DNA from: Camelus dromedarius | Lineage: Eukaryota | Length of the DNA: 64,000 nt | Direction: 5' to 3' | Assembly (NCBI RefSeq): GCF_036321535.1 | Contig: NC_087464.1 | Location: 17,112,001 to 17,176,000, forward strand | Shown here: positions 25,259-31,640 of the stretch, piece by piece | Numbering within the stretch: position 1 is the stretch's first letter | Layout: each line of letters begins with the position of its first letter | Position numbers and translations under genes: made by a program | Notes under the pieces: model-generated | What the model saw: only the letters and a program-made list of their open reading frames with translations | What the model was told of the DNA's origin: nothing | Database searches by the model: none

Positions 25259-26499
25259 TTAGATCAAATGGGTGTTTTGATGGCATAAAAGATGTGCTTT
25301 CTGACGGAAGCTCTTGTCACATTTACTACAGTGAAAAGGTTTTTCTCCTGTATGTGTTCTCTGGTGTGTGAGAAAGTGGGAACGCTGATTGAAGGTTCTG
25401 CCACACTCAGGGCAGCAATAGGGTCTGTCTCCTAGGTGGATTCGTTGGTGGGTGATGAAGTGGGAGCTCTGATTGAAGCTCTTCCCACACTCGCCACATT
25501 TATATGGCCTTTCTCCTGTGTGGATCCGCTGGTGCTTAACGAGGGCCGAGCTGTCGGCAAATCCTTTCCCACAGCTGTCGCACTTAAAAGGCCTCTCGCC
25601 TGTGTGTGTCCTCTGGTGCGTGACCAGATGTGAGCTCTGACTGAAGCTTTTGTGGCAGTAAGGACAAGTGAACGGCCTTTCTCCTGAGTGAGTGCCCATG
25701 TGAGCTACAAAGTGAGAACTATCTCTAAAGCCCTTCCCGCACTCCGGGCATTTAAAGGGCCGTTCTCCTGTGTGGGTTCGCTGGTGCTTAATCAAATCCG
25801 AGCTCTGGCTGAAACTCTCCCCACAGTCTTGACACCTGTAAGGCTTCACTCCTGTGTGGGTCCTCTGGTGGGTGATGAAATTGGAGCTACGACTAAAGCT
25901 TTTATGACATTCGAGGCAAGTGTAGGGCTTCTCTCCTGTGTGGGTTCTTTGGTGCATTATGAGGTGTGGCTTCCGTCCAAAAGTCTTCCCGCACTCCGGG
26001 CACTCGTAGGGTCTCTCACCCGTGTGGGTTCTCTGATGTTTGATGAGTGTTGAGCTGTCGCTGAATTTTTTCTCACACCCATTACATTGGTAGGGTTTCT
26101 CTCCTGTGTGCGTTCTTCGGTGGGTGACAAGGTCTGAACTCTGCTTGAAGCCTTTCCCACACTCGATGCATTTGTAAGGCCTCTCACCAGTATGAGTTCT
26201 TAGGTGTCTTATGAGATAGGAACTCTGGTTAAAGCTTTTTCCACATTCTGTACACACAGGCTTCTTTCCTATATATCCTTCCAGGAGCTTGTTTAATTCC
26301 TTCTCCTGTGAAAAGGGCTCCTGCCGGCCCTCTCCTGGGAGGGTTCCATGCTCCCCTTCTAATTCAAGACCCCCCTCCCAGTTGTCTCCCCAACTAGGAG
26401 TATGAGAAATATCTTTATTGGCCCTTTCTGAGGATGTTCCACATGGTTCTGTTGTTTCAGGAATGTCCTGATCAAGTTTTACCACCTGATTCTTAAAGT
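25259..26499 (-). CDS. ZNF774: ZNF774 final coding exon: spacer plus 12 C2H2 zinc fingers
   Basis: Acceptor TTTTTCAG at 26500. Reads (D)[11 protein letters not shown]..., 12 fingers with TGEKP-type linkers, ends ...[11 protein letters not shown], matching recalled human ZNF774. CDS total 104+107+1241=1452 nt (483 aa). Confidence 0.96.
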
Positions 26500-26959: not shown

Positions 26960-27066
26960 CTGTGTGACTTTCCCTTAGGATCTTCCTCGCTTCAAAATTT
27001 TGGAGTGGCAGGACCCATGGCTCTTCTTTCTGCTCCAGCTGGGAGATTACACTTGGTCTAGAAATC
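26960..27066 (-). CDS. ZNF774: ZNF774 coding exon (107 nt), KRAB-B-like
   Basis: Acceptor CCTTATAG and donor G|GTGAG. Reads (G)[35 protein letters not shown], resembling the KRAB-B motif SKPDVISQLEQGEEPW. Confidence 0.95.
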
Positions 27067-28173: not shown

Positions 28174-28293
28174 GGGGAAAGGGTATAGCTCAGTGGTAGA
28201 GTGTGTGCCTAGCATGCACAAAGTCCTGGGTTCAATTCCCTGTACCTCCACTAAAGATAAAATAAATAAAAACCTAATTCCCTCCCTCCTCCT
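28174..28293 (+). mobile_element. Camelid SINE with 15-bp TSD
   Basis: Full-length body; TSD AAAAAGGCA(G/A)TTAGC at 28159-28173 and 28294-28308. Confidence 0.92.
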
Positions 28294-29142: not shown

Positions 29143-29246
29143 CCTTTGAGAGCCCACTCTTCTAACCGTGCCGGGTGGTATCCTTGAAGAGGACTCTCAA
29201 AGCAGTGTCCAGGTAACTCACTCTTCCCTGAAGTCCCCAGCCACAT
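29143..29246 (-). CDS. ZNF774: ZNF774 first coding exon (104 nt coding; whole exon 29143-29265)
   Basis: Acceptor GCTTTAG at 29266. ATG ATG at 29249/29246; [35 protein letters not shown]; donor GG|GTAAGG at 29142. Confidence 0.94.
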
Positions 29247-29259
29247 CATTGAGGGTCAT
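29218..29259 (-). other. Overlapping upstream [16 protein letters not shown] (fossil KRAB-A frame)
   Basis: ATG at 29259 is out of frame with the main start; stop TGA at 29220-29218. The peptide resembles the KRAB-A start VTFEDVAVDFTQEE. Confidence 0.75.
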
Positions 29260-30779
29260 CAGTTCCTAAAGCAAGAGATCGCAGTATACATCAGTAGCTC
29301 TCTTGATATTCTCACCATTACCTCAAAACAAAAAGACAGCCACTACGACCACTAGGATACCCAAACAAAACCCACTTGACCTGAAGAGCTCTGAAGTAAA
29401 TGCTGTCAACCACAGAAGGGTTGCTTTTCTTATTCTATTTTTACATAATTTTTCCCTGGGCTAACTTTCTCAACACAAAGCAAGGCCTGGACCTCCCAGA
29501 TACATCTACAGAACCCTCAGTCTTTTGGAGACATTAACTTTTTGAGGAACAAATTGTCTATGATGGACAAGATAAACAGAGCAGAGAGTGTGCAGGTATA
29601 ACTCGATTTTTGGAAAGCTTTGGATTCTCTCCACCTACATCTTTCTTAGCTATAGGAAACTACTTCCTTAGTTATACTCATATTAGTTATGAGAACAGCT
29701 GACTTTTCCTGGCTTGTAGATTTGGTGTCAACCTCAAGGGACATACTATGCAGAAGCCCTAAGGGACCTGCCCCAGTACCATTCTATTTCAAGGTTTAAT
29801 GCAGTCAGAAATGGAACTTAAAAAGAGAAGGTTTTTAGAAAACAACACGGATAAGCTGTAAAATTAAGTGAAATTCAATGCGGATAAGCACAAAAAAATT
29901 TCCTGGGTGTTGAAAACAATCATTAACACATTAATAAAATTGACATCAGTCTCATGAAAAAATTATTTGGGGGGAGAGGGTCAGGTTACTGGATGAATCA
30001 GTAATTTATTCAGCAATCAATATGTTCTAAGGCACTAGGAGTCACAAAGAAATATAAGATAATGTTTGTTTGTTTTCCCACTTTAAGAGTTTCCAATAGA
30101 AACTAACCCAAGTCAGCCAGCTGAACCTGCTACAAAGAATTCTGCATTTCAATGGAGGATGGACCAGATTGTGGTGAGGAAATTTTACTTTCATATCTTT
30201 TGTCTCACCCATCAAAGCACCTGGGTACTACTAGAATACACACACTTTTCATGGAAACATTGATGTATTTACAGACATTGCTATGGGTCACTTATAAAGT
30301 ACTGAGTTTTCAAGAACTTAAAAAGCGTAGGAATACATTTCATCTCTGGCTTAAAATCTTAACGAACAAAGATAATGTTAGGAAGTGAAACCTGTAACGA
30401 GTTTTGAGCATACATTTTATTTCTACATTCATTACAAAACACAAGAGCAGGGCCCACCTTCAGGAGATTGCGGGATGCGGGATGCGGGGCAGGGTAGGGG
30501 TTGAGGGGATAGTTCTTAGCCAGGGTTAGAGAAGCCCGGTTTCCCACCGTCTCTTGTCCCCGTACAGGTGACCTCAAAGGCCCTAGAGAGCTGAGGTGCT
30601 GTGACTAAGTGCCATTGTGGGAAGCACCAGTTTGTTCACTGGGTTTATTAATAGGAACATGACCGCAGAGGTAGGGCCGACAGGCCCTAATCTGGGTGCA
30701 GCGGTCAGAGGGTCGCCGGGGACCACCATCCAAGAGCAAAAAAAAGAAAAAAAAAAAAAAAAAACCCAAAAACCCACAA

Positions 30780-31640
30780 AACATTGATTAAGAGGATGAG
30801 CTATCCCGACGCTGGCAGAGAAAACTGCAGCTACCTCTCCTCACTCGTCAGCAAGACTCGCGGGTTCCGAAAGGCGAGCGCGGGGACCAGGCAGAGACGA
30901 CTTCGGGGCGGCGGGCGAGCCCCATCCATTCCCCTCAGCAGCGACCCGGCTGCAGCCGCAGTCTCCCTCCCCGGATCACTCACCTCCCCGGGCCCAGCCG
31001 GAGATGGAGCACGAAGTGAGTCCTCCACCGCCGGGCCGCACCGGGCCCGCAACGCCTTGGCGGTCCCTCCCAGAACCCGGCCGGGATTCGTGACAGGGCT
31101 GTGGGGACACAGGTGGGACTCTGGGCTCGACAGCCAGCCGCCGGAAAACACCGCCCCCGTCCTCTTTCCATTGGCTTTTCAGTGTCTATGACGAGACATC
31201 TTCCCCGTCCATAGGCTAATAGAGCCTTCAATCACCGCGGAGCCTTTTGGGAAATGTAGTCCTGAGCAAGACCTCAAAGGATTGGGAACCCGCCCACCCC
31301 CCCCACCCCCCCTAGTTCCCAGCGATGACAAGTGCTAAACCCAGTTGCCAAGCTACCTGACCACTGGAACCGCCTCTTCGGAGCTAAGAAGGAGATCCAG
31401 AGACAGTACACCCAGAGAGGGATCTGCAGATGCGAACCTCCGGGCCTCACCTGATTAGCGCGGAGCAGCCTTGTACAAACCACGGCATCTCCCGCGCTTT
31501 GGCACCTAGCGGTTCCAGAGCGCGCAGCATCTCGTCGCGCTGACCCTGCTGTCCAGCCTCCTTCGCCCGGTCCCTGGCCCTACCCCACGGCGGCCAGAGC
31601 CTGAATGGTGTCTGCAGCCGGCCAAGTTCCAGGCCAACTC
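30780..31640 (-). promoter_or_regulatory. ZNF774: ZNF774 CpG island / promoter
   Basis: CpG-rich; GC box at 31151-31159, CCAAT (minus) at 31170-31174, ZNF143/THAP11-type ACTACATTTCCCA (minus) at 31248-31260. Confidence 0.88.
30984..31100 (-). other. ZNF774: ZNF774 non-coding exon 1 (5' boundary approximate)
   Basis: Strong donor GAG|GTGAGT at 30983 inside the CpG island, downstream of the CCAAT and GC boxes. Confidence 0.65.

Follow-up and report, generated by a model that had tools for sequence, protein, structure and literature searches.

A frameshifted fossil KRAB-A exon very likely provides the start codon of ZNF774

Zinc-finger genes that have lost the KRAB domain while keeping its exons have been described before. 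ZNF252, a poly-zinc-finger gene of the human 8q24.3 cluster that retains the KRAB-ZNF exon layout, has a KRAB-A coding sequence that is out of frame and a KRAB-B that is degenerate (Lorenz et al., 2010; PMC2865497). Loss of KRAB by exon degeneration is also known from other C2H2-ZNF genes, such as dog LOC488318 (Tadepally et al., 2008; PMC2443715). The gene considered here is ZNF774 of Camelus dromedarius, which lies on the minus strand of a stretch of 64,000 nucleotides (nt) that was analysed as a whole and is referred to as the window (assembly GCF_036321535.1, contig NC_087464.1, positions 17,112,001-17,176,000 of the forward strand). The order and phases of its exons are those of ZNF7 and ZNF10, in which a KRAB-A exon and a KRAB-B exon are followed by a single finger exon entered in phase 1. 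In contrast to these two genes, the KRAB exons of ZNF774 measure 123 and 107 nt instead of 127 and 114 nt, KRAB-A is untranslated and the working protein contains no Pfam KRAB. It is very likely that exon 2 of ZNF774 is a frameshifted fossil KRAB-A exon, within which a start codon in a new frame allowed an old KRAB gene to be kept without its KRAB-A box.

An out-of-frame KRAB-A is already known as a kind of event from ZNF252, and ZNF774 is a new case of it. The distinctive features of ZNF774 are that its start codon is provided by the fossil and that the state is ancient and fixed. The KRAB-B of ZNF252 is broken by a stop, and its authors report truncation of a cluster member, whereas in ZNF774 purifying selection acts on a KRAB-B remnant that is still in frame, the fingers are strongly conserved, with a ratio of nonsynonymous to synonymous differences per site (pN/pS) of 0.07, the start comes from the fossil, and the condition is shared across placental superorders. 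In cases of the LOC488318 type, as in ZNF774, the KRAB exon is kept in the gene and can be recognised in the nucleotides, although KRAB is no longer encoded. Those cases are lineage-specific, however, while the lesions of ZNF774 are ancient and fixed and its dead exon now serves as coding sequence again, read in a different frame. There is also a likeness to overprinting of the viral type, where homology identifies an older frame and the same nucleotides are translated in a younger frame that has no homologues. In ZNF774, in contrast, the old frame is dead, so that there is no co-expression, the new frame represents a rescue after frameshifts and not an added gene, and the new frame is under weak or unproven selection. 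One review tabulates ZNF774 among the C2H2-ZNFs with no effector domain entered, and associations with tumour suppression and autism have been reported for the gene. In the literature searched, which included Zfp774 and KRAB in combination with overprinting, no link between ZNF774 and a KRAB fossil was found.

Exon 2 occupies positions 29143..29265 (-) of the window and carries both the putative KRAB-A fossil and the working start codon. It is flanked by the acceptor ctcttgctttag (...ctttag) upstream and the donor gtaagg downstream; a plus-strand reading of the same coordinates yielded nothing. The first part of the fossil lies in frame 1 (29218..29265, -), lacks one codon after D-F and ends with a TGA at 29220-29218. 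It is followed, after the W codon, by the broken codon GT- (29216..29217, -), where alignment with MAFFT places a 1-nt gap relative to the KRAB-A exons of turtle and alpaca. This deletion moves the fossil reading from frame 1 to frame 3, in which the second part (29143..29215, -) runs to the end of the exon. Frame 3 leaves 1 nt at that end (phase 1), compared with 2 nt for frame 2, and its tail is eroded beyond the residues KD.

The resemblance to KRAB-A was scored with a profile built from 93 KRAB boxes of proteins found by homology search, which was compared with the exon DNA by frameshift-tolerant dynamic programming with penalties set in advance. Exon 2 obtained 26.6 bits against the KRAB-A profile, and the alignment switched from frame 1 to frame 3 just past the EEW position. 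Among 3000 dinucleotide shuffles (mean 9.9, standard deviation 1.75, maximum 20.6 bits) none reached this score, and a Gumbel fit to the shuffles gave a p of about 2.5e-6. Exon 2 also ranked first among 3168 tiles covering both strands of the 64-kb window, the best unrelated tile scoring 19.6 bits. For comparison between species, the window was set beside the genomic loci of Tamandua (L001) and Molossus nigricans (L002) and beside the cDNA contigs L003 and L004, which come, like a further contig, L005, from public RNA assemblies. The path from frame 1 to frame 3 recurs in the window, L003, L004 and Tamandua with 23-31 bits. In Molossus the alignment remains in frame 1, and a 9-nt deletion takes out the shifted stretch.

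A search against Pfam gave a concordant result. When frames 1 and 3 of the window were joined with an X, KRAB (PF01352) was the top family (14-15 bits, E 0.016-0.042), and the equivalent read-throughs of Tamandua (26.6 bits), L003 (22.6 bits) and L004 (22.6 bits) exceeded the Pfam cut-off of 20.4 bits. The alignments of these orthologues span positions 1-37/40 of the 42 in the family. The Tamandua fossil reads MTLDDVAGYF-RAEW/GYLDPA*RILFRD, which corresponds to the motif EEWxxLDPAQRxLYRD with the Q codon now a stop. Neither the working N-terminus (29145-29246, -) nor the exon 3 peptide matched any Pfam family even at E<=10. KRAB was found only on joining frames 1 and 3 with X, so the translated protein has no KRAB-A box.

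The lesions can be placed by alignment with two working KRAB genes, one encoding a turtle KRAB zinc-finger protein (KZFP; L006) and the other alpaca ZNF7 (L007). The KRAB-A exon is 127 nt in both, and the KRAB-B exon is 114 nt in both, or 117 nt in ZNF7 when the alternative site of a NAGNAG acceptor is used. The turtle KZFP (P0103) serves only as a canonical comparator; it was considered as a candidate orthologue, but its 10-kb flanks were without informative neighbours. MAFFT aligned exon 2 with both KRAB-A exons from end to end with exactly two gaps, one of 3 nt past the D-F codons and one of 1 nt in the codon past W. The DNA identity of exon 2 to the two working exons is 57-63%, and these share 65% with each other. 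Exon 3 (26960..27066, -; 107 nt) is the KRAB-B exon and matches the KRAB-B profile at positions 46-72 in the working frame. Its peptide is approximately 50% identical to the KRAB-B of ZNF7 and 57% identical to that of the turtle KZFP. Alignment with the two 114-nt KRAB-B exons requires a single 7-nt gap, located inside the first 14 nt, and the exon opens with GATTTCT, still similar to the GATTCCT of ZNF7. Because the losses of 1 and 7 nt together amount to a shift of +1, frame 2 is the sole reading of exon 2 in phase with KRAB-B and the fingers, and frame 2 is neither of the two fossil frames.

Every element of the initial annotation of this exon that could be checked was recovered in these analyses. 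Its three-frame reading of a 123-nt exon, including the 1-nt slip and the phase-1 end, was reproduced on the minus strand (29265..29143), and the subtraction of 3 and 1 nt from a canonical 127 corresponds to the gaps that MAFFT placed against two independent working exons. The identification as a frameshifted KRAB-A is supported by a significant result in a frameshift-aware KRAB search, by the rank of Pfam KRAB as top family for the read-through, and by the three orthologous sequences above 20.4 bits. Orthologues thus give significant frameshifted KRAB matches, and paralogues have an intact KRAB-A in the homologous exon.

The working start is a tandem ATG ATG in frame 2 (29244..29249, -), derived from the fossil codons AAT GAT GTG (N-D-V). 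The two ATGs lie at 29249 and 29246, so a protein beginning MMWLG... is also possible, and the frame-2 stops TGA TGA (29261-29256) stand immediately 5' of them. The KRAB-A exon of ZNF7 also contains GGC GAT GTG. Exon 4 (25259..26499, -) encodes the linker, 12 C2H2 fingers and the stop codon, and this single 3' exon with the whole finger array is entered in phase 1. Spliced together, exons 2, 3 and 4 give in frame 2 an open reading frame (ORF) for a protein of 483 amino acids with 12 C2H2 fingers at residues 153-481, in which M1 is the sole Met N-terminal to the fingers. The stretch in the new frame comprises approximately 37 residues (M1 to S37, MWLGTSG...EEWALKGIS), and the ancestral frame of KRAB-B is read from about R38-P39. 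As the initial annotation had it, a working ATG lies in the GAT GTG codons and opens a third frame that yields new sequence, and the twelve intact fingers can be counted in the translation; the ATG is not single, however, and its estimate of approximately 35 new residues becomes approximately 37. The proposal that a former KRAB gene was rescued by a cryptic start also stands, except that the one-nucleotide loss cannot by itself bring frame 2 into phase with the fingers. The 7-nt loss in the KRAB-B exon, which had been missed, does so.

The transcripts agree with this gene structure. All three cDNA contigs (L003, L004 and L005) have exon 2 spliced straight to exon 3. RNA sequencing runs containing the finger exon also exist. 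In L003 a GC-rich exon 1 is joined to exon 2, and by this contig the donor of exon 1 was placed: the first 22 of the 29 nt 5' of exon 2 match window positions 31011-30990, near the ...GGGGAG/gtgagt donor. The 3' part of exon 1, a 5' untranslated region (UTR) in a CpG island, accordingly lies at 30984..31171 (-), with the donor GT at 30983-30982. Contig L004 has another, AT-richer upstream exon joined to exon 2, which is 70% identical to intron 1 of the window at about 30216..30680 (-); a related species may thus use a different first exon.

Selection was estimated from pairwise Nei-Gojobori sums over four species, which have low power and are based on non-independent pairs. The pN/pS of 0.07 for the fingers compares with 0.61 for the linker and 0.18-0.26 for the working frame of exon 3. 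For exon 2 the values are 0.58 in the working frame 2, 0.74 in frame 1 and 0.93 in frame 3. There is clear purifying selection on the fingers and on what remains of KRAB-B, while the new N-terminus appears to be constrained weakly at most. Because exon 3 is selected in the frame read from exon 2 and M1 is the only upstream Met, translation from the exon 2 ATG is implied. An alternative is that the main product skips exon 2 altogether. In that case translation would begin at the ATG in exon 1 (31171), which is in phase with exon 3 since it leaves the phase 2 that the exon 3 acceptor requires, and exon 2 would be mostly a non-coding fossil. A Cervus model (P0127) is built in this way, and the weak, non-periodic constraint on exon 2 would fit such a product. 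Exon 2 is nevertheless contained in three independent cDNA contigs, and the window, L003, L004 and Tamandua all have its ATG and frame-2 ORF intact. Its identity between species (87-92%) is above that of the flanking intron (70-84%), whereas the exon 1 peptide is not conserved across species, Molossus and the window drifting between frames. Skipping of exon 2 in the main product is consequently regarded as very improbable.

Two upstream ORFs (uORFs) were noted in the spliced leader. One has 64 codons and extends from the exon 1 ATG (31171) to the TGA TGA in exon 2, 9 nt 5' of the main ATG. The other, of 13 codons, begins at a frame-1 ATG that was once the V of V-T-F (29259); it overlaps the main ATG and is closed by the stop that replaced the W codon. 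In the other sequences with an exon 2 of 123 nt (L003, L004 and Tamandua), it continues for approximately 41 codons into exon 3. It is possible that the two uORFs exert translational control.

The distribution of the lesions among species bears on their age. An exon 2 of 123 nt is common to the window, L003, L004 and Tamandua, whereas Molossus, with two extra deletions, has one of 113 nt. All five agree in the length of exon 3 (107 nt), and the ATG columns are invariant across the five species. The lesions are common to a xenarthran (Tamandua), a bat and other laurasiatherian-like sequences and must therefore be older than the split of these placental groups. Both frame-1 stops, on the other hand, are private to the lineage of the window, the other four species having TGG (W) and AGA at these codons. 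Searches of protein databases returned only unusual placental isoforms of ZNF774, and the canonical 483-residue orthologues, expected to be numerous, never surfaced, so that the distribution of the gene can hardly be judged from negative results in this database. One entry, P0131 (MetaClust UPI00018AA7E1), is a ZNF774-like prediction with the N-terminus LPGHCPENP, without the KRAB-B exon and with many broken fingers. It may represent a lineage in which ZNF774 is decaying.

The unusual isoforms raise the question of whether half of KRAB-A is still in use, with translation of frame 1 beginning further upstream and with alternative splicing or lineage-specific indels linking it to the fingers, so that a partial KRAB-A is kept. 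Frame 1 is open throughout exon 2 in L003, L004 and Tamandua, and predicted isoforms of Tamandua (P0134) and Molossus (P0132, P0001) have it in frame with the fingers; in Molossus, the extra losses of 9 and 1 nt do bring it into phase. In the window, however, frame 1 has two stops. Exon 1, which was searched for a fossil start codon, is without an ATG in the KRAB-A frame past its last stop, and when exon 3 is joined at its usual acceptor, frame 1 meets a stop at the third codon there (GAT TTC TAG). Even where frame 1 is connected to the fingers, just the first 16-17 residues of KRAB-A are included, and LDPAQR..LYRDVMLEN is still out of frame. The long isoforms are moreover automatic predictions that take 120-150 amino acids from the GC-rich 5' UTR. 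Continued use of part of KRAB-A is highly improbable on this evidence, and the long frame-1 isoforms predicted for Tamandua and Molossus probably represent artefacts or peculiarities of a lineage, which is a warning for annotation. With regard to Molossus, its exon 2 (L002:5805-5917) has the further deletions of 9 and 1 nt noted above, which could be real or could reflect an assembly error in a homopolymer (CCC to CC). The canonical MWLG... frame hits a stop there, whereas frame 1, which has an ATG of its own in ..L-M-T.., connects in phase to exon 3 and to the fingers and would restore the first 17 residues of KRAB-A to the protein (P0001, P0132).

Some observations weigh against exon 2 being a KRAB-A fossil with the history proposed here. 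The read-through of the window itself remains, at 14-15 bits, below the Pfam KRAB cut-off. The last third of the fossil, past KD, is only weakly recognisable, the ungapped frame-3 tail giving a p of about 0.07-0.24 against profile positions 30-42, and 0.007 in L004 only. The variable sites of exon 2 are distributed 8/7/9 by codon position among four species, without periodicity in any frame. No orthologue outside placentals was found by protein searches or by an exhaustive representative search, so that the intact ancestral state has to be taken from paralogues and was not seen at this locus. Lastly, dynamic programming of the profile over exons 2 and 3 together can put the second shift late in exon 2, with LEEWALKG read as ...LVSLG.

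The first of these points, together with the inflation of scores that follows from free choice of frame, could be taken to mean that a short exon resembles KRAB-A by chance. Yet the shuffled sequences and the tiles of the whole window had the same freedom of frame, and no shuffle equalled exon 2 and no tile outranked it. The orthologous read-throughs exceed the Pfam threshold, the DNA aligns from end to end with two working KRAB-A exons with gaps of only 3 and 1 nt, and the exon stands where a KRAB-A exon is expected, directly 5' of an in-frame KRAB-B exon. A chance resemblance has a probability close to nil and is effectively refuted already.

The last point belongs to a different history of the same fossil, in which the second frameshift occurred within exon 2 (at about nt 100), LEEWALKG is the ancestral ...LVSLG end of KRAB-A and approximately 27 residues are new. 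For the window, L003 and Tamandua this is the path favoured by dynamic programming over the two exons, with a comparable one for Molossus, and LEEWALKG is conserved. However, the path needs several extra indels (+8, -9 and a shift of the donor) where the DNA alignments need just -3 and -1, and it offers no explanation for the 7 nt missing from exon 3. Pfam, furthermore, aligns the frame-3 read-throughs of the orthologues to positions 37-40, and the alignment was not extended when the frame-2 tail LEEWALKG was appended to the composite. A second shift inside exon 2 is for these reasons considered improbable. The DNA alignments and the arithmetic of exon lengths favour a second frameshift at the 5' end of exon 3.

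With the second shift at that site, the most likely history of ZNF774 may be outlined as follows. The ancestor would have been an ordinary zinc-finger gene with KRAB-A and KRAB-B. Before the placental radiation, its KRAB-A exon would have lost the codon after D-F and 1 nt after the tryptophan codon of EEW (127 to 123 nt), and its KRAB-B exon 7 nt close to its 5' end (a reduction from 114 to 107 nt). Frame 2 would by chance have held an ATG, arising incidentally from the D-V codons (GAT GTG) that are conserved in KRAB-A, with stops just upstream. Translation from this ATG would produce approximately 37 new residues, followed by the KPxVISxLEQxEEPW part of KRAB-B and then by the 12 fingers.

KRAB-A is the box that binds TRIM28 (KAP1). 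Because none of it is translated, the ZNF774 protein is predicted to be unable to recruit TRIM28/KAP1 in the canonical manner, and ZNF774 may instead be a DNA binder without KRAB-A that acts through other partners. The literature search returned no assay or interaction data on ZNF774 and TRIM28. The prediction that ZNF774 does not act via TRIM28/KAP1 matters for the reading of its tumour-suppressor and autism associations, and the loss of KRAB-A explains why the protein is listed as a plain C2H2 protein without an effector domain despite the exon layout of a KRAB gene. The locus also offers a dated natural experiment, in which a KZFP remained under strong finger selection throughout the placental radiation after losing KRAB-A. 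The route of rescue may be a generic one: the GAT GTG of the D-V codons is nearly universal in KRAB-A and holds an ATG in the +1 frame, and other KRAB-less ZNFs may have started from the D-V ATG likewise.

A further step would be to regard the overprinted N-terminus of approximately 37 residues and the KRAB-B remnant as a selected new effector module that replaced TRIM28 recruitment about 100 million years ago, for example through the binding of another co-repressor. This is a speculative and rather unlikely proposal. If it were true, ZNF774 would be a dated case, in a vertebrate, of frameshift overprinting giving rise to the effector domain of a transcription factor. With respect to interaction motifs, RxSVI has been reported to bind the RING domain of IRF2BP2, and human ZNF774 was recovered by co-immunoprecipitation in one direction (PMC11608337). 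The KRAB-B remnant in exon 3 contains RPSVI at 27058..27044 (-) of the window, and the motif is also present in Tamandua. It is missing from L004 (KPSVT), Molossus (RPRII) and L003 (GTGVI) and is therefore not a conserved feature.

Intron 2 contains, at 28180..28260 (-) of the window, a tRNA-derived element resembling a short interspersed nuclear element (ggaattgaacccagg...ctaccactgagctataccc), flanked by poly-T and poly-A, which is ordinary intron content. At the Tamandua locus, a gene of the IQGAP type with CH, RasGAP and IQGAP_helical domains (L001:24171-26284) lies approximately 0.9 kb downstream of ZNF774 and provides a useful anchor for synteny.

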